64,000 bases of DNA, from NCBI GenBank assembly GCA_002269645.1, contig NIVC01001880.1, positions 124,001 through 188,000 of the forward strand, given 5' to 3'. This document shows positions 27,541 through 62,892 of the stretch, piece after piece; the stretch's first letter is position 1; each line of letters begins with the position of its first letter. The position numbers and the translations under genes are program-made. The DNA comes from Macrostomum lignano. Lineage: Eukaryota. The notes below the pieces were generated by a model. The model worked only from the letters and a program-made list of their open reading frames with translations. It had not been told where the DNA came from and made no database searches.

Positions 27541-30500
27541 TCAGTTACCGTCGGTGTCCTTGATGGTCTCCTGCTGCTCAAACACCGGGTAGGCCTCCAT
27601 CACCTGGGCCCAGGTAAGCCTCTCCTGCACCAGCTGCTGCACTATGCCGGGGATCTTCTCCACCTGGATGGGATAATGGGATTTGCGTGAGAGTGAGATT
27701 CGCTGCACCTGCCGGGTGGCCTAGCAACTGGGGATCTGGGAGGCTGGCCCAGCAACTGAGGATCTGGGAGGCTGGCCGAGCAACTGGGGATCTGAGAGGC
27801 TGGCCCAGCAACTGACACTCTGGGAGGCTGGCCCAGCAACTGACACTCTGGGAGGCTGGCCCAGCAACTGACACTCTGGGAGGCTGGCCCAGTAACTGAG
27901 GATCTGAGAGGCTGGCCCAGCAACTGAGGATCTGGGAGGCTGGCCCAGCAACTGAGGATCTGGGAGGCTGGCCCAGCAACTGACACTCTGGGAGGCTGGC
28001 CGAGCAACTGGGGATCTGAGAGGCTGGCCCAGCAACTGACACTCTGGGAGGCTGGCCCAGCAACTGACACTCTGGGAGGCTGGCCCAGCAACTGACACTC
28101 TGGGAGGCTGGCCCAGCAACTGACACTCTGGGAGGCTGGCCCAGCAACTGACACTCTGGGAGGCTGGCCCAGCAACTGACACTCTGGGAGGCTGGCCCAG
28201 CAACTGACACTCTGGGAGGCTGGCCGAGCAACTGGGGATCTGAGAGGCTGGCCCAGCAACTGACACTCTGGGAGGCTGGCCCAGCAACTGACACTCTGGG
28301 AGGCTGGCCCAGCAACTGACACTCTGGGAGGCTGGCCCAGAAACTGACACTCTGGGAGGCTGGCCCAGCAACTGACACTCTGGGAGGCTGGCCCAGCAAC
28401 TGAGTATCTGGGAGGCTGGCCCAGCAACTGACACTCTGGGAGGCTGGCCCAGCAACTGAGGATCTGGGAGGCTGGCACAGCAACTAAGGATCTGGGAGGC
28501 TGGCCTAGCAGCAGACACCAGCAGACAGAATCCGTACCTCAACCCGAACCTGCCGCATGGAGTCGCGCTCCCGCAGCGTGGCGGTCGCCGGCGTCTTGTT
28601 GATGCTATCGAAGTCGATGGTGACGCCGTAGGGGATGGCGATCTGGTCGGTGCGCGCGTACCGCTTGCCGATGGAGACGCTGCTGTCGTCAATGCGGTGG
28701 GACAGGCCGGCCTGGGTGAGCGCCTGGGACATGGCGGTGGCCATCTCGCGCAGCTTGGGGTTGTTGCTGAGCTGCAGCACGCTGCACTTGTAGGGGGCGA
28801 TGACGGGCGGCAGGCTGAGGTAGGTCCGGGCCTCGTCTCCCTCCCGGGCCCGGAAGCTGTGCTCGAAGATGACGTACATGATGCGGCCGATGCCGAAGCT
28901 GGGCTCGATGACGCTGGGCACGAACTCAAGGCGGTGGACGGTGCGCTCAGTGCGGCGGACGGACACCATGTCCGGCGTCAGCTTGCGCTCGCTGCCGCCG
29001 ATCTCGCGAGACGCCGAGCCGAGCGACTCCAGCTCGGTGGCCAGGGAGTTCAGATCCGCCTCCTCCAGGCTGCTCAGGTACTGGGTCACGTGACTGCGGG
29101 GGAGAGGCTAAACTGACTAACTGACTGCTACTCTATACTGACTACTACTCAACTGACTACTACTTTAAACTGACTACTGCTCTATACTGACTGCTACTCT
29201 ATACTGACTACTACTCTATACTGACTACTACTCTATACTGACTACTACTCTATACTGACTACTACTCGACTGACTACTGCTTTAAACTGACTACTACTCT
29301 ATACTGACTACTACTCTATACTGACTACTGCTCTATACTGACTACTACTCTATACTGACTATTATTTTATACTGACTACTGCTCTATACTGACTACTACT
29401 CTATACTGACTATTATTTTATACTGACTACTGCTCTATACTGACTACTGCTCAACTGACTACTACTCAACTGACTGCTACTCTATACTGACTACTACTCT
29501 ATACTGACTACTGCTCTATACTGACTACTACTCTATACTGACTACTGCTCTATACTGACTACTACTCTATACTGACTACTACTCAACTGACTACTGCTTT
29601 AAACTGACTATTATTTTATACAGACTACTACTCATCCTCAGTCATGTACACTCCCTGTAAATTCTATAAATTCGATTGAACACATGACCACAGGGCACGC
29701 AACCTACACGGCATCGGCTTTGAAAGTCCTGCCAACAACGCCTTTGTTTATGACGGCTTCGTTGGCGACCACCACCTGCGGCTCCGCCAGCATCTTCTCG
29801 GCCACCAGCTGGGCGCCGCAGGCTTTGGAGTGCTGCGTCAGGTCGTAGGCGGAGCGGTCGGCGCAGCCAACGCACTCGATCCAGCCGTAGGAGGTCAGGC
29901 ACTCGGCGTCCCAGCAGTCGCAGGCGTAGTGCGCCATCTCGTTGCTGAGGTGCTGGCGGAACCGCAGCCGCTGGCGGTCCACGCCGCAGCGCACCATGAA
30001 CAGGAAGATGCGGGCCATGAAGTAGGCCAGGGTCTGGTTGGCGATCACGCCGGCCGACACCGCCTGCGGCAGCGTGAGGAGGAGGGGCGACTGGTTGGTT
30101 AGAGCTTAGGCTCAGAGATCTATAGACCTAATCTACAAGTTCCAATTGATATCTAATTCCCGTAAATCCGGACATCTAATCTCCATAAAATCGGACATCT
30201 AATCTCCATAAATCCGGACATCTAACTCCCATAAATCCGGACATCTAATTCCCATAAAACCGGACATCTAATGCCAATAAATCCGGACATCTAGTCCCAA
30301 TAAATCCGGACATCTAATCCCCATAAATCCGGACATCTAAAGCCAATAAATCTGGACACCTAATCCTCATCAATCCGGACATCTAATTCCCATAAATCCG
30401 GACATCTAATCTCCAGAAATCCGGATATCTGGCCTGGAACTCCAAAGTCCGGGTCAGCTCCGGTCCAGCACAAACCTCTCCTAGCGGCTTCTCAGTCGCA

Positions 30501-33500
30501 TCCAGGCCGGCCATCTGGTCCTTGGCCGAGTAGAGCGGCAGGCTGAGACCGGCCACGCTGGCGAACTTCGGATGAGACTTGTCGGCGGGGTCCAAGAAGT
30601 GCTCGATCTCCGCCATGGTGAACTCTCGAACTCTGCGGAGGTCAGAGTGATGTGAGCGTTAGATTTCTGTATGGACAAATTTTCCATAACAACTCATTTT
30701 ACAGTTTGAATATGAGTTCCCGTTCCCAGACTCCCAAATTCCCAACTTCAGACTTCGGAATCTTAATCCGACTCCAGAATTCTGGTCACTAACTCTGAAA
30801 TCTCGATCTCAGACTAGAGAATTCTGATCCCAAACTCCTGAATCCTGATCCCAGACTCCAGAATTCCGATCTAAGACTCCTGAATCCCGATCCCAAACTC
30901 CGGAATTCCGATCCCAGACTCCAGAATCCCGATCACAGACTCCGAAATTCCGATCCCAGACTCCAGAATCCCGATCCCAGACTCCAGAATTCCGATCCCA
31001 GACTCCAGAATTCCGATCTAAGACTCCTGAATCCCGATCCCAAACTCCGGAATTCCGATCCCAGACTCCAGAATCCCGATCACAGACTCCAAAATTCCGA
31101 TCCCAGACTCCAGAATCCCGATCCCAGACTCCAGAATTCCGATCTAAGACTCTAGACTTCCGATCTAAGACTCCTGAATCCCAATCCCAAACTCCGGAAT
31201 CTCGATCCCAAACTACAGAATCCGGATCCCAGACTCCGGAATCTCGATCCCAAACTACAGAATCCCGATCCCAGACTCTAGAATCCCGATCCCAGACTCT
31301 AGAATCCCGATCCCAAACTCTAGAATCCCGATCCCAAACTCCAGAATCCCTGATCCCAGACTCCGAAATCCCGATCCCAGAATCCCGATCCCAGACTCCG
31401 AAATTCCGATCCCAGACTCCGAAATTCCGATCCCAGACTCCAGAATCCCAATCCCAGACTCCAGAATCCCGATCCTAGACTCCAGAATCCCTGATCCCAC
31501 ACTACGAAATCCCGATCCCAGACTCCAGAATCCCGATCCCAGACTCCGAAATTCCGATCCCAGACTCCAGAATCCCGATCCCAGACTCCAGAATCCCGAT
31601 CCTAGACTCCAGAATCCCTGATCCCAGACTCTGAAATTCCGATCCCAGACTCCGAAATTCCGATCCCAGACTCCAGAATCCCAATCCCAGACTCCAGAAT
31701 CCCGATCCTAGACTCCAGAATCCCTGATCCCACACAACGAAATCCCGATCCCAGACTCCAGAATCCCGATCCCAGACCCCAAAATCCCGATCTCTGACTC
31801 TTAAATCCCGATCCCAGACTCCGAAATCCCGATCTGGGATTCGGACATCAGAATCTCTGAAATCCTGATCTCAGACTACAGAATCCTGATCCCAGACTTC
31901 GGAATCCTGGTCTCAGACTCTTAAATCCTGATCCCAAACTCCGAAATCCCACCTGAGCAGGCCAGCCCGCGGGCTGATCTCATTCCGGAAGCTGTTGCCA
32001 ATCTGGGCGGCGGCGAACGGCAGCCGGCCCTGGTTGAACTCCAGCAACCGTTTAAAATTGACGAAGATGCCCTGGGCGGTCTCCGGCCGCAGATAGCCTT
32101 TGATGTTGCCGGCGGGCCCGATGGACACCTGGAACATCAGGTTGAACTGCTGCGGCTCCGAGATCTCGTTGCCGGACTGAGGCGACTTGATGCCAAACTT
32201 CACAATAACCTCCTGCAGGCCGGCGCCGTCCAGGTTGTCGAGGCTGTTCAGGATTCTGCGCGCCTCATCGCGCCGGTCCTGCGGCGTCTTGGGATCGGCC
32301 TCCAGCTTCTCCAGGAACTGCTTGACCACGTGGTCGGCCCGGAAGCACTCGCCGGTTTTCAGGTCCTTCACCTTGTAGTCGGCGAACCTCTCCACGTGGC
32401 CGGAGGCCTTCAGCACCGGCTCCGGGGTGAGCATGGAGCAGTCCATCTCGAGCATCTGCTCCTCCAGCACGAAGAAGTTTCGCCACTCCTGCAGCAGGTT
32501 TGCCTTCACCGCGCAGCCCATCGGCCCGAAGTCGTACAGGCCCTGCACACCTGCGGCAGGGGAGCAAGTGGGGAGCATGTTGCAGAGTCTTGATCAGCAT
32601 CTGAGATTCTCAAGACAATCCTGGATCTCCAGGGCTAAGCTGCCACCATCCCAGATCCTCAATGCTGAGCTGCCACCATTCCAGATCCTCAATGCTGAGC
32701 TGCTACCATTCCAGATCCTCAATGCTGAGCTGCCACCATTCCAGATCCTCAATGCTAAGCTGCCACCATTCCAGATCCTCAATGCTGAGCTGCCACCATC
32801 CCAGATCCTCAATGCTGAGCTTAAACCATCCCAGATCCTCAATGCTGAGCTGCCACCATCCCAGATCCTCAATGCTGAGCTGCCACCATCCCAGATCCTC
32901 AATGCTGAGCTGCCACCATCCCAGATCCTCAATGCTGAGCTGCCACCATTCCAGATCCTCAATGCTGAGCTGCCACCATCCCAGATCCTCAATGCTGAGC
33001 TGCCACCATCCCAGATCCTCAATGCTGAGCTGCCACCATCCCAGATCCTCAATGCTGAGCTGCCACCATTCCAGATCCTCAATGCTGAGCTGCCACCATT
33101 CCAGATCCTCAATGCTGAGCTGCCACCATTCCAGATCCTCAATGCTGAGCTGCTACCATTCCAGATCCTCAATGCTGAGCAGCCACCATTCCAGATCCTC
33201 AATGCTGAGCTGCTACCATTCCAGATCCTCAATGCTCAGCTGCCACCATCCCAGATCCTCAATGCTGAGCTTAAACCATCCCAGATCCTCAATGCTGAGC
33301 TTAAACCATCCCAGATCCTCAATGCTGAGCTTAAACCATCCCAGATCCTCAATGCTGAGCTTAAACCATCCCAGATCCTCAATGCTGAGCTTAAACCATC
33401 CCAGATCCTCAATGCTGAGCTTAAACCATCCCAGATCCTCAATGCTGAGCTTAAACCATCCCAGATCCTCAATGCTGAGCTGCCACTATTCCAGATCCTC

Positions 33501-34271
33501 AATGCTGAGCTGCCACCATTCCAGATCCTCAATGCTGAGCTGCCACCATTCCAGATCCTCAATGCTGAGCTGCCACCATCCCAGATCCTCAATGCTGAGC
33601 TTAAACCATCCCAGATCCTCAATGCTGAGCTGCCACCATTCCAGATCCTCAATGCTGAGCTGCCACCATTCCAGATCCTCAATGCTGAGCTGCCACCATT
33701 CCAGATCCTCAATGCTGAGCTTAAACCATCCCAGATCCTCAATGCTGAGCTGCCACCATTCCAGATCCTCAATGCTGAGCTGCCACCATTCCAGATCCTC
33801 AATGCTGAGCTTAAACCATCCCAGATCCTCAATGCTGAGCTGCCACCATTCCAGATCCTCAATGCTGAGCTTAAACCATCCCAGATCCTCAATGCTGAGC
33901 TGCCACCATCCCAGATCCTCAATGCTGAGCTGCCACCATTCCAGATCCTCAATGCTGAGCTGCCACCATTCCAGATCCTCAATGCTGAGCTGCCACCATT
34001 CCAGATCCTCAATGCTGAGCAGCCACCATCCCAGATCCTCAATGCTGAGCTTAAACCATCCCAGATCCTCAATGCTGAGCTGCCACCATCCCAGATCCTC
34101 AATGCTGAGCTGCCACCATCCCAGATCCCCAATTCTAAGCTGTAAAATGCAGTCACTTGCACCACAAACCATTCAGTAATGACACTCACCCCCATAGATA
34201 GCAAATGATTGGTCATAGAAAAATCGCTGCTTTAGCAGAGTCTCCAGCTTGTTGCGATCAAAACCCTCCAT
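27541..34271 (-). CDS. GARS1: Glycyl-tRNA synthetase (eukaryotic alpha2 type), 623 aa from the first visible ATG
   Basis: Exons 34190-34271 (acceptor at 34290), 31953-32550, 30476-30632, 29708-30063, 28538-29093 and 27541-27663. All phases are consistent and total 1872 nt. Motifs [82 protein letters not shown] and [11 protein letters not shown]. Confidence 0.97.
27724..28512. repeat. 28-bp minisatellite filling the last GARS intron, ~28 copies
   Basis: Unit GCAACTGACACTCTGGGAGGCTGGCCCA. Confidence 0.97.
29120..29635. repeat. 17-bp minisatellite in a GARS intron, ~30 copies
   Basis: Unit CTATACTGACTACTACT. Confidence 0.95.
30150..30430. repeat. 22-23 bp minisatellite in a GARS intron, ~12 copies
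   Basis: Unit of the type CCATAAATCCGGACATCTAATCT. Confidence 0.95.
30720..31950. repeat. 21-bp minisatellite in a GARS intron
   Basis: Unit CCAGACTCCAGAATCCCGATC, running up to the donor at 31952. Confidence 0.95.
32627..34138. repeat. 30-bp minisatellite in GARS intron 1, ~50 copies
   Basis: Unit CCAGATCCTCAATGCTGAGC(TGCC/TTAA)ACCAT(C/T). It accounts for the long repetitive ORFs in the track. Confidence 0.98.
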
Positions 34272-35032
34272 TACTTCTTCAACAATATACTGCAGCTTTC
34301 AAGAAAGAATTTTTTATTAAATCTTATACCAATACAGTGAGAAAAATATATACAAGAAAATATAATAAACAATTGTATATAATAAGACAGTTAGCATTCA
34401 ATTCTTAATTTAAAAATAGTATCCCTTCAAATATTAATGAATTTGTTTATTTATTATTTTTAACCTTTTGTTACTTTTAAATAATGCAACTTTCCTTTTA
34501 AATTGTTTTCACAAATAGCTTTAGAACCTAAACTGACAACTCTGACTCCTAGAAGAAGTAATAGAAGTCTTTTACTTATATTATATTATTTTAGATTAAC
34601 TAACTAAATATATTTTAATTTAAATATATTAAATTTTATATTATTTTATTAATTTCTTTTTTACTAATTTAAGATAGAAGATTTAATAAGTGTTCTGTAA
34701 GTATATAACTAGAAAAATATACGCAAAGGCAAATTTGAATGAGAAATAGGTTTTTTATAAATGAATAATTTAGCAAGGCAATTATATAAATTGCCTTTAT
34801 ATAATAGCAAAAATATAAATTGGAAAGAAAAAAGTAGGCCCCTCCTAATATATTTCTATGCTTGTTTATTCTTATTCTAGACTATACCAAGGTCTAACTC
34901 TAAGTGCACTAAATATTTTAAGATGAATTATATTAATTTAATATCCTTGATGGCTTGAGAGTCAATTTGAGTAAAGTTTTTCTTTTGCCTTATGGCTTAT
35001 GGTCTACAGTCTAGAATAGCCTAAAATAGAGC

Positions 35033-35435
35033 CTGGGTTTTTTTAGGCCATACGGTAGCTACCGGCTACCCAAAAAAGCCATTGGCAACTAGATTTGTTG
35101 CATCAGAGGCCAATCTGGCAACCAACTTGAACCAAGGAAGTTGCCAATGATAAAACAGTCTATCACATTTTATTACTGCTAAGTTTGGCTTGGCTAAAAA
35201 CCTGAAGCCTGAGCTGATTCAAGCATATTATTTTTTCATCAATGCGTGAAAATTGTTGCAAAAACAACTTTATAAAGTTGTTTTGTTGTATTGTGATTTG
35301 CATATGATTTTTGCTATGCACAGGCACTGGGACACTAAAATAGGTCAGTTGCCAGTTGGCAACTGAGGATGGCAATTGGCAACTAGATTTTGAGCTCCAG
35401 TTGCCATGGCAACTGGATTTTGGATGAAAAACCCA
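35033..35435. mobile_element. ~400-bp non-autonomous element with short TIRs and a 9-bp TSD (MULE-like)
   Basis: TSD AAATAGAGC at 35024-35032 and 35436-35444. TGGGTTTTT/AAAAACCCA termini. Eight GGCAAC/GTTGCC motifs inside. Confidence 0.6.
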
Positions 35436-36733
35436 AAATAGAGCTAAAATTGCTAAAAATTATTCCCAAGCTACAACTTGCAAGTTAAGTTGGTCTTAAC
35501 AATTAGCAATGTTGAGCACCATTAATGAAAATCTTAACTTCCGATCCATTAATGGCAAAAGAATCTGATTCAGCTAAAAATCTTAACTTATTAATTCTAA
35601 TTTCATTTGATAATTGTTAATATAAATAAGTGTTAATCTGTTAAAGTTAACACACAAAAAATAGAAATCTTGCACTTTTTTTCAAAACACGCTTCATAAT
35701 GCACTGTCTGCTTTTCCATCTTTTTTAGTGAAACAGCACAGAGCCGACAGAGGTCATCTATTTGATTTACAAGCTAAAAGCCTAAAAGGTAATAAATAAT
35801 AATTAAAACAACTTGCATATACAATAGCTTGTACTACTAAAAGTAAGCATAAGGTAAAAGAAGTGACTTATTTATTTGAAACGTGAAAGCTAATTAGGCC
35901 CTAGTCAATAGTAAAATACGAATTTTTGCATGAGCCTCATTCGACATTCAAATTAATAATGTGACTGCTAAAGATTCAAGTTTAAATATGAGCAAAATTT
36001 CTCGGAAACAAAGTCCAATTAAACAAACTAAAAAATTTACCTAACTCTGCATAGAGAAGAGCAGGCCCTGCATGGCAATATGCAAGCAAGTACGCAAGTT
36101 TTCTGGGTTTCAGAAGCGGCAAGGGCTGACAAAGCTTCCAATCTCTTTAAGCCCAGCCACTAAAGCCCTTTTACTCGTAGAACTTTCTCTTAGACCGAGC
36201 CCTCATTTGAAGCCGTCTCATACAGGGGTGCATTCAGGAATTTCGTTTGGGGATATCGGATTCCGCCCCTAGATTCTGAACTTCCGCTTAGAAATTTGAA
36301 AGCACTCCATCAATTTTCACTTTTGCATGTAAAACATGGCATAAGGACCAGGTAACTTCTATATAGTGGTCCTTGCATGGCATAAATCATTATGGCACTC
36401 AAATCCGCGGAAAATATCGCAGAGTTATTACAAAATGAAGGATTAGTCTAACCAATTGTTGTGTTCTAATTAACACAGAGAGTTTCTTTGATTGAAGCTT
36501 TCTCCGCGAGACACAAATCTCGCTCACAATATATTTATAGAGGTGAAACTCCTACTTGCACGTTGCATTGCCAAATCGATACGCAATCACCTACACATTC
36601 TAGTCTGAGTACAGTATACGCCCACGCATTCAATAATGTCAAAAGTTAATTGTCAGTGGTCAGTTCATTGCGCAAGCATTGTCAATCACAACACCAATAT
36701 GTTTGTGCCTGTCTGCCCTGTGCCGTGCATTAA

Positions 36734-36815
36734 GTGCACTCAGGGACTACTAATAACTACTCATAATTCAACTACATGTACACTGTAGAGTTATTGAGTA
36801 GTTCCCTGAGTGCAC
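36734..36815. mobile_element. 82-bp fold-back mini-element (MITE-like)
   Basis: Arms GTGCACTCAGGGA-CTACT-AATAACT and their near-perfect reverse complement. Confidence 0.55.
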
Positions 36816-37353
36816 CCTGCCGTCACTGCAGTTTCACACACTCCGTCTCTCGATATGTCTCTCTTCTCTTTTGTATCAGACTCCATAAAGCCTCAAGTCC
36901 ACGCATAACACAAGGGCAGCCGGCTTAAATTATCGAACTTGAAAAAATTGGGGGTCTCAGAATTTGGGGGGATATGCCGATATACGATCCCGGGCTAAGC
37001 TACGCTACTGCTCTTATAGCGTGAACCAGCACATGAGACGCACACCGCACCCCCACCAACCATGCAGCCGGGCAGAGGAGGCTCAGTCCCGGTCCCTGTC
37101 AGCTAAAATCGATTACATAGTCAGTATAAACAGTCCCTGAAATCGGCAATAAGCATATGATTTATTGAAAGGCTACATATCGACCCTCCAGGTTGGTCTG
37201 TTTATAACATGTACATATACGTAGACAGTTAAAAGTTAAGAACTAAACCTAAGAAAGTTAAATAGGTTTGTAATAAACTTAACTTACCTTAAATACTTTG
37301 AGAACGACTCACTTCATCGTTGACATAGAGCTAGTCCAACAATCATCTAGCAC

Positions 37354-40300
37354 ATGGCAGCCGAGTCTTCAGCAGCGGAGTCTTCAGACAGTTCGGAAGC
37401 TTCAGAAGCAGATCCCAACACAGAAAACTTTCAACGGCGATTGTTCGCAAAATGTATAACTTTTATATATTTTTGCTACCGCAGTTTCTGATATTCATTT
37501 CATACCTAACACACATCCACTTTGCAGGCCCAGCTCTAAACAAGATTAAGGATAAATTCCGAAAACTGAATATGGAGCAGAAGATGCTGGTGTACCTGCT
37601 ATGCAAAAATCCGAAGGAATCAACGCACCTTGAACTCAAAGAAGCGTTTCCATCCAGCAAAGATAAAGTTTTACGCTCTGCATGCTCAATGTACAATGGG
37701 CTTGACAAAGACATGCGAGAGCCGAGTCTCACAGACAGCCAGCAAGACTCCTCGTACATTGTTTATGGCGTCGAAGAGGACGATAAGAGCAAGCAGAGGG
37801 TCTTCAAACCGTTGAAAAAAGAAACAAAAGACAGCAATATTCAAGATTGGTTTCGCAACTGCACTCGGCCCATGGTTCGCGTTACCTGGCACCTGGTGAA
37901 ATTTGACAGAATGTTCACTTTCCCTATTGCTGATCGAATGGCGGAAATTCCACCAGGAACTTACGCATTGCTGGAAGTTCACACAGGAAGTGTTGGTCCC
38001 ACCAGATACAAAAGCACTGAAAAATCGAGTACGGGTATTTGGCATTTGTACTCGAGAACAGACGCCAGCAATTTACCAGAGGAGAAGATGGACGACAATT
38101 TCAAAGAGGAGCTGAACAGACAGTTTGAGAACAGGTTTGACCATAGTGCACTCAATCCAATCGCTGATGCTCTTCAGGAATACCAGGAGTCGTTTCGAGT
38201 TCTGCTACTGACAGATTTTTCTGATATGAATAACGGTGATATCAGAAATGAAAAAGAAAATTTGATCCAGGCTCTAACTAGGGGCAAATGGAACATCATC
38301 GTTGACTTCGATAAAAAGAGCAGAAAAGCTGGAGGGCATCACCAGTTCATCACTCAGGAAATGGAAGCTCAAGGTCGAAAGTTCTCACTTCATACTCTTC
38401 GTGAGTCAAACACTTCAGATGTTCCTGAAGAAGAATTGAGTCAGTGCAAGCAGGGAAAAATGTGTTTGTACATTCAGGCCGACGGATGCAGTGAACGAGG
38501 GCCGGGGGGAATCAAAGGTCCAAAAAATGGAGAAAAGCTGAAAGATCTGCTGAAATTAAAAGTTTTCGTTCCTGTTTTAGAAAGCGATGGCCCCCAAAAA
38601 CGAGTTTTTTGCTTGGCACTTGTAGCTGGTACGAACAATTCCCCTGCTGAGCTTGATCAAATCCCTAAATTGTTGAAAAAAGCCATTAAATCTGCTAATG
38701 GAGACTCAAGCAAGTTTTATTCCCTAGCTGTGTGTACCAGTGAGTCTGCTAGAAGCAATGTTTTACCGAAACTCTACACAGATCAATTCGAGACGTACAC
38801 GGTACCTGCCAATCAACTCAGTTGCGCTCTCAACTCTCTGTATCCTGAGAAAAATCAGTCATTAACTGAAGAACTTCCGGGGTGTTCCGGCAAGTTCTCC
38901 ATGCCTTGCAGCAGCTACGATTTCGTTGAATTCTTCCACCTTACAGCCGGACGGCCCGAAATGCCTTTGTCGGACCTGTCTGAGGATGATTTTAATGACA
39001 AGAGACAGAAATTTCTGGCAGGAAATGAGCTGACAGCAGAGATGCTGTACTTGCATGATGAAAACCTTTTTAACAAGAGGATGTTCGTCCAGCGTAGTCG
39101 AATCAGTGATCTTGAAGAAGAAGTCAAGAGCGCGCTTGAATACAGCACCATAAGGTCTTTTGAGAATTACGACAACAAACAGCGTTCAATAATCCGATTT
39201 ATGCATCAGCCGGTCTCCGGAGCGACGACTATTTCGCATGTCGTCATGTGGAAATTCCATAAAGAATACCCATGCATCAAAGTGAAGGAAGCAAAAGGTG
39301 AAGACATTGTTGGCAAAGAACTGAGGAAACTGATTTCGGATGTTTACATAAAGGCACAGAAGCCTGTTCTTGTCCTGTTTGACAATGTGGCTGATTATTC
39401 GGCGATAACTCGCTTCATGAGTGAATTGGCCAATTTTCATCCAGCACCAAAACTTGTCGTGCTGCTAGTGGAACGAGTAGTCAGACAGGAAGACTCCGGT
39501 ACTGGATCAGGAAGAAATCAAGTTCTAAAAATGAAGCTTTCTCCTGAGGAAGAAAAACGCTTCGCTAAGCTATATGAGGAAGCTGGTGGAGACATTAAGT
39601 TAATAGATAAAAGCGGAACAGATATCCGCGAGATCTTGAATGACTGCGAGAACAAAAAAACACCATTTCTGTTTGGTATACTGCACTTCCTAGACTATTC
39701 AAAAGTTAACGACATTGTTATTCTTCTGCTAGATAATAGCACTCGAGCTACCGCGAATTTGCTAATTTTTGCTTCCCTCTCAAAGCACTACATTAACTAC
39801 CCAGTTAACCTCGCTATCGCCGCACACTTGCTTGACCTATCGCCCACTCAGGATGAACCCACTGAAGTGCTAAAGAAGCTGGGACTTCATCAGCATCTTC
39901 TAATTCTGCAAAAGGTTAAAGGTGCTTACAACTTTTCGCCGGTTGTTTGTGTAGCTGAAAAAATTATGGAACTCTCCAATCGAAGCGATGACGAAGGTGA
40001 AGGTGAGGACGACGGTCGCTCCAAAGAGCAGAGGCAAGTTTTCTGGTTTGTCCAACAACTCTGCAGGATGGCAGACACAATTGGATTACAGAGTTGCCTT
40101 GGCAACCTCGTCAGACAGCTGACTACGTTTAAACGGGATTCTAATGATCAGTTTAGCAACTTCATGAAATTGCTGTATGAATGTAGTAAGGATGATCTTG
40201 ATGCTTTAAAAGATCTTATACACAAGCTGGCGAGCTCATTTCCTTCACAGAAAGGCCACATTCTGATACACTTGGCTCGCCTGCTCACCTACAAAGAAAA

Positions 40301-41699
40301 ATCATATGACGAATCACTTATCCTGGTTCGAACAGTTCTTGAGCTTGAAACATCAGAGACTTTTTCGGATACTAGAGTCACTGACGCAACGCTGCTCGGT
40401 ATGTCTTCGCACCTCCTCAATTGCAAAATCGATCAGCTTAGTAACGAATCGAATCCTATTGAGTTTAAACAAGTAATCAGCTACGCTTTGAACAGTATTG
40501 AGCTATCAAAGAGATCGCAAGCAAAAACAGGATATTTACACGAAAGCGGCGAAGTAGTGCACAAAGCACATCCGTTTATTGGTGAGATTCAGGCTCAACG
40601 ACGGCTGCTAAAAGCATTCTTCGATCTGGAATGCCATGGAGATGGCAGAGAATTTATCCGAAAAATTCAGGACTTACCGGCAGTCTTGGAAATTAACGGC
40701 GATATTTTACAGAAAATTTTCGCTCTCGAAAGCATGTACAATCGAGGGCAGTTGGAGCTCGGATCGTATTCTTCAAAAGAGCAACTTACATTGGACCGCA
40801 CAAAGAAGGAGTTCATGCAGAGATATTCACACTGCTCGGTGAAAGAGCTGCTGGAGGTCAGTGTAAAGACCGGCTTCCAGTTTGCATGGGTGGCCTTTGA
40901 TTATTATATGTCGCTGCCTTGCATCCGGGCACCTGACGATACCGAAAGTGATCTGACTAACGAAGAAGAGAATTCTGGAGCGAAATCACGTGTAACAATG
41001 TGGGATCGAACTTGGAATGTGAGCAATCTTCCGAGAGAAAAGAAGAAAACACTTCTGAGTAATTTATTGAACTGTCCATCTAAAATGGCGAAGAACTACT
41101 TTGAGATATGCGTCCTGCTCATTCTTTTTAAGGGGCCAACTGATTTTGATCGCGCACAGAAGGTTACGCTTGAGTGGCGCAAGCGATTTGAGTCTGACCA
41201 TCTCGCCCACTTCATGCACGGCACCCTCATGTTGGTGAAATACCTTAAATTACCAGTTGGCGACATGGCCACGAATGCCAAAGAGAGATTGCTGAGGAAC
41301 GCAACGGATTCTCTATCGATTTGCAAAGAAATGATGACTTGTAAGAACCGCCAGCACAAAAAACCAGGATACTATCGTCTTCGTCTTTTTATCACAAGCT
41401 CTGGAGAGCCTCTCAACATTATCAAGTACATGCCGAAGAAGAATACACACGAAGAAGAGAAGGAGCACATTCGGAAGAATAACGGAAGGAGGTTTACCGG
41501 CATCGTCGATGAAGACAGAAGGTTAATTTGCTTCGAATTGAATTCCTGGCGTCTGAATCTACCATCGCAAGATGAGAACAACGCGGAAAAAATGGACGAC
41601 ATGGTTCGGAAGAAAAGCCGAGTGTCCTTCTTTCTTGCGATGGCGTACAGTGGTCTCACTCCGATAGACATTAAGGAGGAGCCGCATCTGAACAATTGA
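37354..41699 (+). CDS. SAMD9/SAMD9L-like STAND NTPase (AlbA_2/Schlafen-like, SIR2-like, NTPase, helical/TPR, OB-fold), ~1423 aa
   Basis: Exon 1 is 37354-37453 (ATG...AAA T|gtataa), followed by a 74-nt intron and exon 2 at 37528-41699 in phase. Motifs ESTHLELKEAF, VLRSACSMYN..IVYGVEED, WNIIVDFDKKSRKAGG, IIRFMHQPVSGATTISHVVMWKFHKEYPC, PVLVLFDN, LKMKLSPEEEKRF and RVSFFLAMAYSGLTPIDI. AATAAA at 41763-41768. Confidence 0.85.
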
Positions 41700-42561
41700 G
41701 TATAGATTAGTCGCTATAAATTTTAGCAAGAATTAAAGCTCGAGAACCATATCTAATTGAGTAATAAACTAAGCGATTGGATTGTTAGCTATAGGTGATT
41801 AGGTAGTCAGATGATTGAGGGAAGCTTAATTTAACTTATTACGTAACCTAGCCAAGGTATTATATTGTTTCTGTCAGGATTCTTATCAATTTCAGTCATT
41901 ATTATTTAGGCTACTACAGAGTGCCGCTTCAAATTCTATAATATCATTGCTTTTTAACCGTTGTTCCTTGATCCCTTTTTCCTTTCTCCCTTTTCGTTTA
42001 TTCGCTAACTATGTAAAAATTAACTGAAGGCGCAGTTTTTATCTCGACATAGGGTACGCTCGTAACTATAATAATAGAGAATTATGTTGATGAAGTTTAG
42101 AGTTTGTACGAGCGTATATTCATTATAACGATAAAGCGGTTAAGCTCATATAAATTTAAATTAATAAGTTAGTTTGTTTCTTACAGGCATGATAGGTTTT
42201 TACTATTTCGCTACGTTTATTTTTAGTGAACTACCTTACTAAACAGGGGATTATTTATATTAATTTGTAGATTATTTTATTATAGCTCGTATTGCAGTAA
42301 AAACCAATGAATTGATTGAATCCTGCACTGAGCGAGTTGAAAATCTTCAAAAACGTTGCTTTAAGTACAATTAAAACAAATAACTAGCTATATTACTTGC
42401 GGCCTTCGGTATAATTTTAAATTTTCCCTAATTACGAACGTACTATTCAGTAGTGATTTTTGTGCATCTTTTAAAAACGATGGTAAAAGGTTATCCAAGT
42501 TTTTGCTTGTGCTAGTAGACTACTTGATTTTTCTGCTATTGTTTTGCAGTGGTTTAAGTAG

Positions 42562-43855
42562 TGTTGTACCCACCAGAATTGCCCCGAGAGCTGTGAATCC
42601 GACTAGGGTAGCAGGGGCTGCCCAGCTGGGACACCCCCAGGTCCCGCCTTACGCCTGTCCCTAACGCTGCGAGAGTTCACAGCCACCCATGGCTGGCGAA
42701 AGTTCACTTGACCGGCCCCTGAATGCTGGGAGAGTTCCCAGCTGCCCCCCCCCGCGCGGCACCCAGACCCAGAAAGACAAAGAAGGCTCGCACCTGTAGT
42801 TCGGTCCCAAAAAACCACCGACTATCTGCGTACCAACCGTCACTTCTTTTTTCTTTTACTGCGACTGACGCGAGCGAGGAACGCAAGGGACGGGGCGGAG
42901 CGGCGACCGCACATTAAATAGCAAGAAAAGGGAGGGGTAAACAGATATAGGCAGACAATTAAATAAAGTACACTTCACCCTGCTGGCCAGCCAATCACAA
43001 GCCGCCTAGCCGGGGAGGGGTGGAGCAAATTGATTTGGCCCCGCACAAAAGACCGGGGGTCTGGGCAGGCTGTAGGCCAGGCTAGGGAGAAGCTCAAGTC
43101 CCCAAACCCCAGCCCAACCCAGAGCGAGGGGGAGAGAGAAAAAAGAGAGAAAAAGTCTGGGAGGGTGGCGCCCTCGCTGACGCAGCACGGCCAACAGTAG
43201 CCATAAGTAGCCGTTTTATGTAGCAATTTTGCTCGTTTTTTATGCCGAGAAAGTTTGATCAATTATGCTTTAAAATTTGAAACCTTTTTAACCTGCGAAA
43301 ATTTTATTATCCTTTGTTGTAAGATAAAGTTACTCCGCAACTGCACTGCTTAAATTTTATAATCTTATCTACGTTACACAATAATTGCACTTGACCCTTA
43401 CCCTTATTCATTCAAGCCTTAAAACAGATGAAAAGTCTCCTTTTATTATTGAACCTTATTTAGCTTTTAGCAGTGTACTTTTATATTTGTAATATTTATT
43501 CTTGGTTTTTATCTGCATGCGTGTGCACCTGCACCTGTAATCCAAATATTATTTAAACTTTACGTGCGCCTACTTATATATAGCTACAGTAGTTGCTTTT
43601 CTAGTTTAGCTTACTCGCTATTTAATTCACTATTTATCTTAATTACCCCTAATTTTATCAAACCAATTATTATATCCTTTTCCTAACAATAAACGCGTCA
43701 AGGACTACTGAGTAGTTGTTAAGCAGTCCTTGAAACGCATTATTTATAACAACTTTTTGCGTCAATAAACTGATGGAAATCAATACATAACTTGTTCCGC
43801 TTTTATTCTGATCTGATTTGATCTGTGTTTTCTGTAGGAAAGACAAGGTGGTGCC
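42562..43855 (+). mobile_element. Candidate 5' LTR (~1.28 kb) followed by a PBS-like motif; internal sequence decays by ~44580
   Basis: TGTTGTACC start and GGAAAGACA end (43845), then TGGTGCC at 43849-43855, 3 nt downstream. AATAAA motifs lie in the distal part. No second LTR or TSD found. Confidence 0.45.
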
Positions 43856-45143
43856 AATGATCTAATAGCAGAACTGAGACGCATCTTATGGGACTGGAGG
43901 GGTGAGCCCATAGCTTCACTTGTGTGGTCCAGCAGGTAAAACGTTTACTGCGCCAGTTGAAGAATCCACATGGCCAGGGGAGTTGTTAGTTGCTACTAAC
44001 CCAAGCCTTATGGACTAAAGACACCGCCAACCCAATATTAGTGGAATCTGGGACGGTGCTAGGACCGAGTCCACCCAGGCCACCACCCAGCAGACAAGTC
44101 CCGGGAGTGCGCGAAAAAGAAAAAATCTTAGGATATTACTAAAAGCGGTCCGAGAGCGGGGAAACCCAGGAGTCTCGGAAATGGCTTAGTTAGTGACTTA
44201 GTTTTGGAGCGAGTCTGGAAGGCTTGTTTCCGAGGGCGAGTCTCCTGTCAGGCAGTGCCTACACTGCCTAGGATACCTACAGGGCTGCAAGCCACAAGGG
44301 TATCACCTATCCAGCTCTATATTGGAGGCCAGGTCAAGGGATCAGGAAGGGGCACAAGGAGCAAGAGGACCCGGACTCAGCCGGTATCCCCGATTCGGGA
44401 CGAACATCCAACCCAGGACTCTAGTCCACTGTCAGGATGAGAGCCGAGACACAAGGGCAGGGAGACAGCCATAGGAGCCGGCAGATGGACCAAGGACAGA
44501 GAAGTAGTGAACTGAGTGTAACTGAGTATTCTTACAGCGGGCAGGGAAAATACCCGATCAAGTCGCATTAAGTATTAAAAGCTTGAGTCTTGTCTCGTAA
44601 ACTAAAAAAATCTTTTTTTTTCATTTTATGCTTCAGCTTAACTTCAGACCAGCTTTGTATGAAATTATTCTGATGCTGCAACATCCAGTATGATATACAT
44701 GTACATGCTATTTGTAAAAATCGTCCTTAACTGAGCTGATGATATAAAAATTATGTGTAAAAATTCTTAAATCGCAATTTGTAATGAGACCGACAGCTAT
44801 TATTGATAAATCTGCAGGTGAAAATTACAGGTAGATAAATGATTGCCTCTTTTTGACTGTAATATTGTAAAGTTTCTTATGCAGAACGAATGGGTGTGAA
44901 AAATTATAAACTAAAATGATTAAAATATCAAAGCCTTAAGAAAAGTTTAGAAAGTGGACCGCTGTGCTGATTTTTCCACATACTTAAATGGTACGCCAGA
45001 TGAAGACGGTTGCTAAAGGCGGAACAGGTGCGTAATTGACTCAGTGATGATACTTAATTCAATATTCTTTAATTTGGTGTTGGTGAGCCGAGACTCCAGA
45101 TTAGCAGGCAGTTTTCTTTCTGAACGGGAGTCACGAGAGCAAA

Positions 45144-48100
45144 TCAGCTGTACACCGGCAGAACTGCATCCGCTCGGGCCCTGCGGCTCAGCTGAGTCTG
45201 AAGTGATGAAGTGCAGTTTGGGTTGATGGTTAAACAGCGGGGCTGCAATTGGATGATCGAAGCTTATCTATAAAAAAAGTTTGTCTCCTTTTCTCAATCC
45301 CACGTCTTCTGCTACCAGTTCCCAACCAAAAGCAGCAAATGCTCAGTTCAGATGCAATTCAATCAACTCACGCTGTGCTCGTAGATGCAGCAGGCGGGCA
45401 CCCAGGCCAGCAGGGACAGCAGCACCACTATGAACACCAGGTTGCAGCGCAGAATGTCACCTTGCGATTGGGTTTAATTAATTGTGCCAATTATCGGCTT
45501 TCAATTACCTCATTTTCAATCACTTAATCACTATTCACTTCACTCCCGTCGAACCGCCCCCCTCACCGAGCGACTCGCCGCTGATTCGACCGACCAGCTG
45601 CCACATCCGCACGGTCAGGCCGCCGCCAGCGAAGTCCGCCACCTCCGGGCAGTCCGGCCTCCGCACAGCCGCGGTCGTGCCATTGTGATGCGGCTCGCAC
45701 GCGTCGCCGTCGCGATCTCCCTGGCAACACTGGCTGCAGGCGTCAGCAGGCAACGGGCAGGAGCAGTCGGTCTTGCCGACCAGCTGGCAGCGGGTGAGGC
45801 AATCGCCGCCAGCGCAGGCGCCGAGTCCGCGCAGGCAGGAGGTGCCGTTGGCAAGCGGCGCAGTCGTCTCCGGTGCGGGACACGCGACCGAGCGGCCGTC
45901 GCACTTGGCGTCCGAGCGGCACGGCCAGAGCGGCTGGGCGCGTCGGCAGACGAAGCCGGGGGCGGCTGGGCGACAGTCGATGCAGCAGGCGGAATTCGCG
46001 TCGCTGCAGGAGGCCCCGGGACGCAGGCGACAGTCCGGGCCGCAGCAGTCATCCCCGGCGGGCCCGGCGTCGCAGTCTTCGCCGACTTCTCGACGGCCGT
46101 TGCCGCAGACCTGGCCAGTCTTGTTGGAGAAGCAGTCGGCCTCTCGACTCTGTGGATCCGCGGTGGAGGGGCTGGAGGGGCTGGCCTGAGCTGCGTAGGG
46201 CATGCTGTATGCTGGCTTTTATGGTATCGCGTGCTCTACACTCTACAAGCCTCGTACGCGTCTGCACTCTGAAAGTACAGCTATGTGCAGTATTTTGAAT
46301 AAATACGGAATAAACAGGAATATGAGCCTAAGGATTTTCACACTCCCAGCCCTGCCAACTCACAGCCAGCACATCGGCGATGGCCTTTCTACTGCAGACG
46401 GACAGCCGGCTGTGGTTGATGTCTTTGCCAGTGACGGCCTTGACGTGCATGAGGAAGTGACCGCCCTGCTGCGGCCCGGGGTTGCACTCGCCAGCCGGAG
46501 GGTCGTGCGCCGCGCCCAGGTTGTGCGCCAGCTCGTGCGCCATCACCAACGTGGCCTGGCGAGTGGAGATGGCTTCGCCTTTGTTGTTGCTGAATGTTGT
46601 CAGCCCGACGTTTCTAGCAACGTACGTATGGCGGCCGTGGATTGAGTAGCTGGGGTTCGAGCAGAGACCTCCGGGCTGGGACCTGAATTGAGTGCCCTGT
46701 GAGGTGAGGTGAGGTGCGAAGGTGAGATGCTTTGCGTTAGAAATAGGATTGGATTGGATTGTCAGGTGGCAATTCACCTGATACGCCAGCCCCAGCAGTC
46801 GCTTCTTCAAGCGCCGAAACGCGACGAGGTGGTTGAGGCAGTGGGCGAACAAGTTTAGGCCGTTTTGCCTGAAGTCGGCGAACGCCTCTAGCAACTGATA
46901 AGCTGAAACCTCCCTGTGGATGTTGGCGTCATTGAAGTGCATCGCCTCGGAGGCCGGCACCGCGGTGGGGCCGGTCATGGCGACCAGGCTGCTCACCTCG
47001 AAGCTGATCGCAGTGAAGTTGACCTCACCGCTGCTGGTTGTGAACACCTGGGATGAATTGTTTCATGATTTTCTAATTCTAAATGCTGGGTCTCACCGAG
47101 TCAAATGGAGAGCTTGAGAACCCCCAGTCTGCACTGGCGCTCACCGAGTTAAAAAATATCCTGTTGGCATCGTCGGTCGCCTTGATGAGAAACTTCAGCG
47201 CTGCCGACACGGAGCCAACATGAGCGACAAAGGCGTGGTCAGCGATCAACTGCAAGCGACAAACTCGACGACGTGTCGAAGATGTCTGCAAATCTGCAGA
47301 CCGACGGTAGCGACGCCAGGAACCTGCGGCTGCCGCTGTCTCCACCAGAGTTTCATTGCCACTTGGGTTGTGCAGTCCACACCAGAACTCCCTGCCAGTT
47401 GTGGTTTATGTAAGGCTACAGAAAAGGCGCCACGCTTTGCTTTTGGTTCAGGTTTACGAAATTTGAGCATATTTTCTAATGCTCCTAAGGACTCACGTAG
47501 AGTTCATGCCGGAATCGTAGTACACCAGAGTGCGGTCCTCAGACTGATTGCCGGTCAGAAGGGAGAGCGGCTGCAAGAGGAATTGGTGCATCAGCAACTG
47601 GCATGACATCAGCTCCGACATCAACAGGTTATCACAGCTGCTCATTGCCTCCTACCTCAATGTTCAACACGTTGAAGTCCGTCTCGTAGACTGTCAGGTG
47701 AAATCGATGCCGGTCGGCGTAGCCGGTGACGCGAGAGCCCGGCTGGTCTGTAAGATTTTATAAAGTACTTTTAATTGAATCTTCGATACCTTAAAAGTTG
47801 AAGTCTAGCGAACTGACCATCGATGTAACCAGTGAAGAAGTCTTCAAGCAGCTCTTTGGTTTTGAGCTCAGATCGGGAGCCATTCTGCGCGATCAATGTG
47901 CTCACGACGGGATGCAGCTGGCTTGCGTAGGAGCGGTCGGGTTTGAGCACCAAATGGAACTGCCTGCATTGGATTTGTGCGAACAATAAAGGTTAGTGCC
48001 ACAATAGGGTGGTGGAACATGCTGAAGCAGCAGTCTGCTCGCACCAACCTGCTGAATGCGACAAAGTGCAGGTGCTGAGTGCGCAGCGCATCCGAGCCCA

Positions 48101-48377
48101 GGCTCCTCCTGCTGACAAGTCTGGCCGGCTGCAGCAGCTCAAACTCGCTCAGCTGGGAGTGCAGATATTCTAAAAAGTGACGTGGATTTTTAAAATCCAT
48201 GGAAAGCAAAGCAAAGCAATGTGCCTGTGAAAGGAGCTGCTTACCGTCTACTGACTGAGGTGATTTCGCACCGTTTACTTGATGAGGCTGCAAAGCTATC
48301 AAGATGCAGAGGTATGCAAGCTGTCCACGTGACGGGAGACTCAAGCCGATCCATTTTCTGTGGCTGTGAGACGCCAT
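45144..48377 (-). CDS. ADAM17: ADAM17/TACE-like membrane metalloprotease, 11 exons
   Basis: Exons 48245-48377, 48049-48169, 47818-47963, 47656-47747, 47497-47570, 47145-47391, 46778-47047, 46364-46696, 45567-46149, 45372-45460 and 45144-45197 are phase-consistent. Hydrophobic leader; pro-domain (LSEFELL, DFFTG, SRV, RTLVY); Cys switch WCGL; furin site RRYRRS; CRLQLIADH; zinc motif HELAHNLGAAHD; Met-turn FLMH; disintegrin VCGNG..EDCD; CSQCC; TM segment NLVFIVVLLSLLAWVP. Confidence 0.9.
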
Positions 48378-48614
48378 TCGCCCAGCGACCGTTCGGTCTG
48401 AGCTCCTCAGCGGGAAAATTATTAACAAACAAATCGCCTTTTTCAAAACCCAAATGAGGTCAATTATTTCTCTAAGAGAACTCCGGCCACAGACAAGTCT
48501 AAAAGCTGTCAAGTGCGCTGCAGCAAGGCCAGAAACTGAAAAAAGCATCACAAAGCGCTTCTCGGGGCTCAAATACATGTATAGAGGTTTGATAGGCTCT
48601 TAAATTACTTCATG

Positions 48615-49152: not shown

Positions 49153-50842
<1,690 letters not shown>

Positions 50843-52485: not shown

Positions 52486-53146
52486 ATGAATCACTGCGAC
52501 AAAGTTGTCGGATTTGTGAGCGAGAAAAACAGCAAGAAAACAGACGTTGGAATCGCTTCCTTGATTCACTGCCATCGGAAGATCGACGAGCACTTGGATC
52601 CGCTGATAGACTTCGCGATAAGCCAGGTGCCGGAGGATCTGCAGCCGTTCACTCCAATCTTCTTGGCCGCCAGTGCGCGGCCTGACCAGAGACCAGCAGC
52701 AGCTGCTGATGCGCTGGGTGTCCGCTAAATTGAAGAAGTCCCCGTTTGCACTCGTCGCACCGTCTTCCGATCAGCCGCCTGGCTCGGCTGCTGCGTCCTT
52801 CGTGCTCAGTGAGAACGAGGAGGCCTACTACACCCTTCTGATGCTCCAACTAGTCGTAATGGGTTCAAAAGATTGGGCGGGTGGCATAATGTACCGAAGT
52901 TGGCAACAAAATTATCGATGCGCTTCGATCAAGATCGGCAATGAATCCACTCAAATCGCTGTAGTTAATAATTCCACGAGAGAGTTACCGCTGGTAAGCT
53001 GGAGGAGGGCTAATAAAGCAGACTTTTTCGTCGAAAGTTCAATGGGACTGGGCAAGTCTGCTGCAGCGCTGAGCATTCTTGGCTACAGAGACGGGCAGCA
53101 GCTCGAGGCTGAGTACAAGTCTTCATGCCTGAACCCGGATAGTTGA
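52486..53146 (+). pseudogene. GDA1/CD39 (ENTPD/apyrase)-like fragment, frameshifted and truncated
   Basis: HLDPLIDFAISQVP..TPIFLAAS, then a frame change near 52670 to RGL..QQ.LL; ACR3-like LSENEEAYY; ACR4-like KIGNESTQI; ESSMGLG; SCLNP. No ACR1 or ACR5 seen, and the ORF stops where a satellite begins. Confidence 0.7.
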
Positions 53147-53775
53147 CGGAATAGTTGACGGAATAGTTGACGGAAAAGTTGACGGAATAGTTGACGGAAA
53201 AGTTTACGGAATAGTTGACGGAGAAGTTGACAGAAAAGTTGACGGAGAAGTTGACGGAAAAGTTGACGGAATAGTTGACGGAAAAGTTGACGGAATAGTT
53301 GACGGAATAGTTGACGGAATAGCTGACGGAAAAGTTGATGGATAAAGTTATTATCCTACTAACACGAAAAGTTGACGGAATAGTTGACGGAATAGTTGAC
53401 AGAATAGTTGACGGAATGGTTGACGGAGAAGTTGACGGAGAAATTGACGGAATAGTTGACGGAGAAGTTGACGGAAAAGTTGACGGAATAGTTGACGGAA
53501 AAGTTGACGGAATAGTTGACGGAAAAGTTGACGGAATAGTTGACGGAAAAGTTGACGGAATAGTTGACGGAAAAGTTGACGGAATAGTTGACGGAATAGT
53601 TGACGGAGAAGTTGACGAAAAAGTTGACGGAATAGTTGACGGAAAAGTTGACGGAATAGCTGACGGAAAAGTTGATGGATAAAGTTATTATCCTACTAAC
53701 ACGAAAAGTTGACGGAATAGTTGACGGAATAGTTGACGGAAAAGTTAATGGAAAAGTTGACAGAAAAGTTGAGGG
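53139..53775. repeat. 12-bp minisatellite GTTGACGGAA(T/A)A with an internal higher-order duplication
   Basis: The spacer GATAAAGTTATTATCCTACTAACACGAAAA occurs twice, about 340 bp apart. Confidence 0.97.
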
Positions 53776-62890: not shown

Positions 62891-62892
62891 TA

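Follow-up and report, generated by a model that had tools for sequence, protein, structure and literature searches.

The 64,000-nucleotide stretch of the Macrostomum lignano genome considered here (contig NIVC01001880.1, positions 124,001 to 188,000; hereafter the window) carries an intact, transcribed gene for a large protein that is colinear with the vertebrate SAMD9 and SAMD9L proteins apart from their SAM domain. Its membership in the broad SAMD9 family is well supported by sequence comparison, and we consider it likely that this is a functional, transcribed flatworm gene for a divergent member of that family of STAND-like NTPases, which may act through a SAMD9-like mechanism. The identification stands up to independent tests in five of the six regions of the protein (the AlbA_2, SIR2-like, NTPase, first helical and C-terminal regions), which bears out the proposal of a first-pass annotation, made from the letters alone, that the gene encodes a SAMD9-like STAND-type NTPase.

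The same annotation went further and called the gene a candidate for a new system, and this is too strong. The SAMD9 family has already been reported in animals and bacteria (PMC5445408), and two M. lignano paralogues of the gene, P0002 and P0003, are already labelled "SAMD9-like" by UniRef. What the gene adds is a divergent flatworm member of a family already known, rather than a system of a new kind. Platyhelminthes are missing from the phyla listed in the survey that founded the family (PMC5445408).

Gene structure and transcription

The longest open reading frame (ORF) in the window runs for 1415 codons on the + strand (37452..41699), ahead of a runner-up of 1236 aa that belongs to a long interspersed nuclear element (LINE). 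At ~43% GC, with ~5.8% of random codons being stops, we estimate the chance of a stop-free run of 1415 codons at about e^-80. The two frames of the gene can be joined only by splicing out a 74-nt intron, and doing so reproduces the RNA-seq-guided GenBank model exactly. The spliced coding sequence of 4272 nt translates to 1423 aa and is identical, residue for residue, to PAA63023.1 (P0005; BOX15_Mlig007074g1), deposited as a "hypothetical protein" of M. lignano from NIVC01001880.1. When P0005 is compared with the window by tblastn, it aligns at 100% identity across 37530-41696 and identifies one copy only. The product of exon 1 is an acidic, serine-rich N-terminus without a recognisable domain, and an in-frame TAG at 37348 lies upstream of the ATG. 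The intact gene of about 1423 aa with one short intron and a poly(A) signal, placed by the first-pass annotation in an invertebrate genome, is thus what the record contains, the invertebrate being a free-living flatworm.

The M. lignano assembly was annotated from an RNA-seq transcriptome that was guided by the genome and had transcript boundaries informed by experiment (PMC5730564), so the gene model itself implies transcript evidence. Lack of expression in any condition had been named beforehand as grounds for abandoning the SAMD9-like reading; the RNA-seq-guided model (PMC5730564) points to expression.

A second copy of the locus (L001) lies at NIVC01000107.1:169673-184495 and corresponds to window positions 34200-45593, with the same flanking pair of synthetase and metalloprotease genes. 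The aligned flanks, at 34.5-38.0 and 40.5-45.5 kb, are ~100% identical. Between them, an intragenic patch at 38.2-40.2 kb has an identity of 91-96%, with 148 substitutions, a synonymous divergence (dS) of 0.15 and a ratio of nonsynonymous to synonymous divergence (dN/dS) of 0.33, which indicates that the coding sequence is under purifying selection. The patch may have arisen by gene conversion, with another paralogue or an allele as donor, may be a mosaic of alleles, or may be an artefact of a highly redundant assembly. In addition, 2 bp are deleted from the NIVC01000107.1 copy at window position 38461-2, and this frameshift accounts for the truncated, 940-aa model of that copy.

The truncated copy, together with a LINE 17 kb downstream of the gene, could be taken as signs of a pseudogene, of faulty annotation, of contamination or of a gene carried by a transposon. 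We regard this as highly improbable: the copy in the window has an unbroken coding sequence of 1423 codons, a canonical intron, poly(A) signals and an RNA-seq-guided model, host genes flank both of the duplicated loci, dN/dS is 0.33, and the gene is free of repeats. Contamination and horizontal transfer of a bacterial gene were rejected in view of the intron, the host flanks and the co-duplication of the gene with its neighbours. A pseudogene and transposon cargo were likewise considered and rejected.

Domain architecture

We compared a profile of the flatworm protein's clade with a profile of 12 fish SAMD9 sequences, region by region, using hhalign with 60 column-shuffled controls for each region. 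At full length the two profiles align colinearly over residues 36-1423 (Prob 99.3%, E=3.9e-20). The sequence comparisons show a domain order of AlbA_2, SIR2-like domain, P-loop NTPase lacking the usual lysine, helical repeats and a predicted SAMD9-type C-terminal (OB) region, colinear with vertebrate SAMD9 and SAMD9L minus the SAM domain. The motifs quoted by the first-pass annotation occur in the order it gave: ESTHLELK at residues 64-71, GKWNIIVDFD at 286-295, HQPVSGATTISHVVMW...YPC at 593-616 and VSFFLAMAYSGLTPIDI at 1399-1415. Its remark that the N-terminus has no SAM domain also holds, as none was matched by Pfam. Within the SAMD9 family only vertebrate members carry the SAM domain, which does not define the family elsewhere (PMC5445408).

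The NTPase gives the strongest signal. A profile of four Macrostomum paralogues matched human SAMD9 (37ib_A) at E=1.7e-11, and a profile of 16 sequences matched it at E=3.8e-30 over ~520 positions, in an alignment that extends ~330 residues past the NTPase. Against the fish profile, hhalign gave P=2.9e-13 (z=24.9) for this region. The P-loop HQPVSGATT...W...YPC aligns to HHPGCGGTT...W...FRC of human SAMD9, and the alanine at the position of the lysine is common to the fish sequence HHPGCGATT. The absence of the Walker A lysine (GG[ST]), together with an upstream conserved histidine, is a hallmark of the SAMD9 family (PMC5445408), and the corresponding lysine-less signature H-x-P-G-x-G-G-[ST]-T..W was found in ~120 of the relatives that we recovered. 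The Pfam NACHT and NB-ARC models did not match the NTPase segment, and the motif GxxxxGK[ST] is absent from the sequence. The Walker B motif reads FD-S in the paralogues. Because the Walker A lysine is absent and the hhhhD-N form of Walker B lacks its second acidic residue, the NTPase probably binds nucleoside triphosphate (NTP) without hydrolysing it.

The all-helical region that follows falls into two stretches. The first (residues 760-1070) aligns with fish SAMD9 at P=3.4e-9 (z=20.8), and the second (residues 1070-1300) gave no significant alignment with it (hhalign P=0.14, z=1.2). Helices are predicted throughout the region in a low-confidence AlphaFold2 model. At the C-terminus, 98 columns align with fish SAMD9 (P=2.9e-4, z=7.9), exceeding all 60 shuffles, and the motifs RLRLFITSSGEPLNII and VSFFLAMAYSGLTPIDI align to HFYLGKxxGLxRL and VSFYIGFAIDGPLAYDI of the fish proteins. 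Sequence likeness therefore supports homology of this region with the SAMD9 C-terminus. Searching the PDB with the C-terminal profile produced only a spurious match, at an E of ~1.

For the SIR2-like domain the evidence is moderate and comes in part from structure prediction. In an AlphaFold2 model built for residues 35-504, confidence is restricted to ~244-474, where the predicted local distance difference test score (pLDDT) is ~70-85. In a Foldseek search with this domain, the top three PDB matches were to human SAMD9 cryo-EM structures (9zjz, 9zjs; E 5.9e-6 to 1.9e-5, ~245 aligned columns), with generic alpha/beta folds ranking below them. The comparison with the SIR2 region of fish SAMD9 gave P=0.012 (z=4.9), exceeded all 60 shuffles and covers the W..DFD block, whose W288 and D293 are invariant or nearly so in our alignment A5.

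The N-terminal domain was recognised when an N-terminal segment of 221 aa was scanned in isolation: PF04326 (SLFN_AlbA_2) matched over profile positions 1-113 of 118 at E=8.5e-8, with 33.2 bits relative to a cut-off of 25.3. It also matched two of the paralogues. The full-length Pfam scan of the 1415-aa protein returned zero matches, and AlbA_2 appears only when the segment is scanned alone, so full-length scans of such proteins can under-report domains. From motif position, the candidate acidic site comprises E64 and E69 (in ESTHLELK) and E117 (in YGVEEDD). The four relatives that cover E64 all keep it and have E or D at position 69, and E117 is kept in four of five. The AlbA_2 profile had no match in the PDB at E<=10. 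Two further sets of searches were also negative: phmmer with the single protein found no match among PDB sequences, and separate Pfam scans of the SIR2, NTPase, helical and C-terminal segments gave no meaningful match. The positions of these features, and of the neighbouring genes, are collected in Table 1.

Table 1. Features of the SAMD9-like locus and its neighbours, in window coordinates.
Feature	Position	Strand	Details or basis
Exon 1 (33 1/3 codons)	37354..37453	+	Start ATG at 37354; read from the sequence and the match to PAA63023.1
Single intron (74 nt, phase 1)	37454..37527	+	GT at 37454, AG ending at 37527
Exon 2 (residues 34-1423 and TGA at 41697-41699)	37528..41699	+	ORF and splice model
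AlbA_2 (Schlafen-type), putative nuclease effector (residues 64-214)	37617..38069	+	Pfam PF04326
SIR2-like alpha/beta domain, motif W288-x4-D293-F-D (residues ~244-474)	38157..38849	+	AlphaFold2/Foldseek, hhalign
STAND-type P-loop NTPase (residues ~520-760)	38985..39707	+	Profile, hhalign, signature
Walker A without lysine, H593-QPVSGATT	39204-39230	+	
Walker B, VLVLFD652-N, second acidic residue missing	39363-39386	+	
All-helical (TPR-like) region (residues ~761-1304)	39708..41339	+	Alignments and AlphaFold2 helices
C-terminal region, equivalent to the SAMD9 OB-fold (residues ~1305-1415)	41340..41672	+	Motifs RLRLFITSSGEPLNII, RRFTG, VSFFLAMAYSGLTPIDI
Poly(A) signals	41732..41768	+	ATTAAA at 41732, AATAAA at 41763
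Class II aminoacyl-tRNA synthetase (tRNA-synt_2b + HGTP_anticodon, 629 aa)	~27541-34289	-	
Reprolysin-type metalloprotease (780 aa)	~45144-48578	-	

Relatives and phylogenetic placement

Word-indexed homologue searches, whether started from the protein or from the paralogue profile, returned Macrostomum proteins only. We recovered a wider set of relatives with an exhaustive hidden Markov model search of 1.84 billion representative proteins, which gave 593 matches at E<=1e-3. The closest relatives beyond Macrostomum form a clade of invertebrate and protist proteins, with E-values from 1e-86 to 1e-22. Two of them, P0007 and P0008, can be aligned from end to end, including the same N-terminal domain. 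Relatives of ~1450 aa from large eukaryotic ENA assemblies (P0009, P0010, P0011 and P0015) keep the core of SIR2-like domain, NTPase and helical region, with AlbA_2 replaced by a HEPN domain of the DZIP3/hRUL138 type (Pfam E down to 4e-32). Next come a rotifer protein, P0020 (Brachionus calyciflorus CAF0856975.1), and P0023 from a EukProt transcript of the amoebozoan Cavostelium apophysatum, which, provided that the transcript is not contamination, apparently takes the clade outside the animals. More distant relatives match from the NTPase onward only. They are mostly bacterial, with TCAD9 and nSTAND_NTPase5 (some from Candidatus Glassbacteria), and a fish SAMD9-like protein is among them. Within M. 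lignano itself there are at least three divergent paralogue lineages, represented by the gene in the window, P0002 (36% identity) and P0003 (35% identity).

In a neighbour-joining tree (Poisson distances, 451 core columns, 500 bootstraps), the Macrostomum trio is recovered at 100%, the invertebrate and protist clade at 88% and fish SAMD9 at 100%. The core of the flatworm protein is 23.6% identical to its own clade.

Several observations weigh against reading the protein as a SAMD9 counterpart that works as the vertebrate proteins do. In the tree, the invertebrate and protist clade and fish SAMD9 are joined at 33% bootstrap only, and the identity of the core to fish SAMD9 (17.4%) is lower than that to bacterial proteins (19.7%). 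Specific similarity to the AlbA_2 domain of vertebrate SAMD9 is absent, with hhalign finding nothing significant against either the whole of fish SAMD9 or its AlbA_2 region (P=0.31 in one comparison; P=0.37 and z=-0.2 in the comparison with shuffled controls). The spacing E-x4-E is of the Schlafen and bacterial AlbA_2 type and not that of E184/E196 in SAMD9, and a glutamate occupies the position equivalent to the catalytic aspartate of SAMD9 and SLFN (Asp241). In the P-loop, the first glycine of the P-G-x-G-G consensus is a valine. Both terminal folds are modelled at low confidence: the AlbA_2 part of the N-terminal AlphaFold2 model has a pLDDT of <50, and a model of the C-terminal 939 residues, including the OB region, reaches a pLDDT of 39.5 from an alignment of four sequences. 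PADLOC, run on the full protein and on four segments, returned no match at E<=0.1, the release used being one that predates Avs9. Finally, we found no paper and no functional data in the literature on SAMD9 in Macrostomum or other flatworms.

Because the NTPase core is no nearer to fish SAMD9 than to its bacterial homologues, the support extends to membership in the family and not to one-to-one orthology with SAMD9 or SAMD9L. That membership in the broad family is nevertheless well supported follows from the founding description, which counts bacterial members. The AlbA_2 domain, in turn, is not specifically SAMD9-like, and the sister proteins carry HEPN in its place, so an independent acquisition or exchange of the effector module is possible. 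Such a scenario has been argued for bacterial Avs9, and convergence on the combination of AlbA_2 with STAND is documented (PMC12680541).

The same evidence raises a possible, though tentative, alternative, in which the flatworm protein has the architecture of SAMD9 without being its orthologue. It would belong to a separate invertebrate and protist lineage of lysine-less STAND proteins, built on the core of SIR2-like domain, NTPase and helical region, that gained its RNase module independently, and the likeness at the effector end would be convergent. The 88% clade of nearest relatives, which comprises P0007, P0008, the HEPN_DZIP3 proteins, the rotifer and Cavostelium, and its poorly supported union with fish SAMD9 speak for this alternative, as do the AlbA_2 domain without detectable likeness to that of fish SAMD9 and a core about equally near to bacterial TCAD9/nSTAND5 proteins and to fish SAMD9. 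However, the SIR2-like and C-terminal regions match vertebrate SAMD9 specifically, while matches of the exhaustive search outside the protein's own clade start only at the NTPase, and the entire protein is colinear with SAMD9. The faintness of the AlbA_2 likeness may also reflect fast evolution and shallow profiles (5-7 sequences).

Extended to its relatives, this alternative would, with the same tentativeness, place the flatworm gene in a eukaryotic lineage of its own, made up of SIR2-like STAND proteins without the lysine and with an exchangeable N-terminal RNase, either AlbA_2 or DZIP3-type HEPN, similar to the swapping seen in bacterial Avs proteins. If this were true, the SAMD9-type architecture would have been assembled more than once in eukaryotes, and the mosaic 2-kb patch would represent ongoing gene conversion or diversification of the sensor core.

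Possible mechanism and function

Taking the flatworm protein as a divergent SAMD9-family member, we can propose how it might act by analogy with the vertebrate proteins. In human SAMD9L, NTP is bound but not turned over, and the closed interface is made up of the SIR2 and OB domains (bioRxiv 10.64898/2026.02.01.703102). In its resting state, the flatworm protein would likewise be closed and autoinhibited, with the SIR2-like and C-terminal regions packed on the NTPase and NTP bound and probably unhydrolysed. A trigger might then open or oligomerise the protein, candidates being double-stranded nucleic acid of foreign origin and proteins of viruses or retroelements. The N-terminal AlbA_2 nuclease, with its candidate residues E64, E69 and E117, would then cleave tRNA or other RNA and shut down translation in the affected cell. 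SAMD9 is known to be an anticodon nuclease for tRNA-Phe (PMC10246899), and an E/E/D site is essential in SAMD9L (PMC11221667). By this analogy, an immune function of the flatworm protein, such as the antiviral or anti-retroelement role proposed by the first-pass annotation, is plausible.

A family member need not be an immune protein, and the gene could encode a regulator of translation or proliferation with a housekeeping or developmental role, in neoblasts or the germline for instance, or a catalytically dead scaffold or decoy. Human SAMD9 and SAMD9L are also antiproliferative (PMC5445408; PMC12042756), the flatworm protein departs from the canonical motifs (glutamate for the catalytic aspartate, valine for the P-loop glycine, no second acid in Walker B), and the neighbours of the gene encode an aminoacyl-tRNA synthetase and a metalloprotease, with no recognisable immune cluster. 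Nonetheless, we consider such a role unlikely. The deviations are conserved in all three Macrostomum paralogue lineages, which is better explained by a working variant than by decay; the combination of an AlbA_2 or HEPN RNase with a STAND core is typical of conflict systems (PMC12680541); and at least three divergent paralogue lineages occur in the one genome.

A flatworm member of the family is of interest for several reasons. SAMD9 and SAMD9L matter in medicine as antiviral and antiproliferative proteins, and their mode of activation is still under study; M. lignano, which can be made transgenic and is tractable by RNA interference, offers a testbed for an ancestral, interferon-independent function of the family. 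The natural variants of the flatworm protein (PVSGATT, the FDN of Walker B and the glutamate at the catalytic aspartate position) bear on whether binding NTP without hydrolysis is a general mode of the family, and the relatives bearing HEPN make a case for probing the modularity of effectors in animal STAND immunity. Even if the gene were to be a routine paralogue, the analysis would still correct the annotation of a "hypothetical protein".

Genomic context

The SAMD9-like gene sits amid ordinary host genes on the opposite strand (Table 1). A LINE (non-LTR) retrotransposon occupies 59186-63846 on the - strand, and its 1236-aa ORF encodes an AP-endonuclease, a reverse transcriptase and an RNase H (Pfam E 8e-31, 1e-19 and 3e-14). 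A 317-aa ORF upstream of the LINE ORF had no Pfam match. At 4207-5238, also on the - strand, a 343-aa ORF contains an F-box-like Pfam domain (E=5e-9). Minisatellite arrays are many and long, at 27717-34142, 49345-50768, 53141-53772 and 56253-57063. Examples include a 30-bp unit repeated 50 times (32634-34142), a 28-bp unit repeated 29 times (27717-28518), a 21/42-bp unit repeated 51 times (30770-31834) and a 14-bp unit repeated 103 times (49345-50768). These arrays produce spurious long ORFs on both strands, and several of the arrays fall inside the synthetase gene model.

Comparison with known systems

Among known proteins, Schlafens (SLFN) share with the flatworm protein an AlbA_2 or SLFN-box nuclease domain with the signature of E-x4-E followed by an acidic residue. 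They differ in lacking a SIR2-like domain, a SAMD9-type NTPase and an OB region, and the long forms carry a different, helicase domain at the C-terminus. In bacterial Avs9, too, a STAND core is joined to an AlbA_2 nuclease, and it is this nuclease by which Avs9 kills cells (PMC12680541). Bacterial SAMD9-family or nSTAND5 proteins, with TCAD9 and nSTAND_NTPase5 or described as a "TPR repeat protein", have the lysine-less NTPase followed by a helical region, but the similarity is confined to the NTPase and the first helical region, their N-terminal modules differ, and the flatworm gene is eukaryotic and has an intron. The proteins of the invertebrate and protist clade, known mostly from ENA and Logan assemblies, differ in that several carry DZIP3-type HEPN where the flatworm protein has AlbA_2.

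Compared with vertebrate SAMD9 and SAMD9L (human 9zjr, 9zjs, 9zjz and 37ib; fish SAMD9-like), the flatworm protein is without SAM or PYD, and the core identity is only ~17%. The spacing of its AlbA_2 glutamates is 5 residues, against 12 in SAMD9, with glutamate in place of Asp241, and its P-loop reads PVSGATT rather than PGCGGTT. The interferon regulation of the vertebrate proteins cannot apply in a flatworm. Common to both are the order of the core domains, the lysine-less Walker A with its upstream conserved histidine and the W...(Y/F)(P/R)C that follows, the W-x4-[DE]-F-D of the SIR2-like domain and the terminal VSF[FY][LI].....G....DI.

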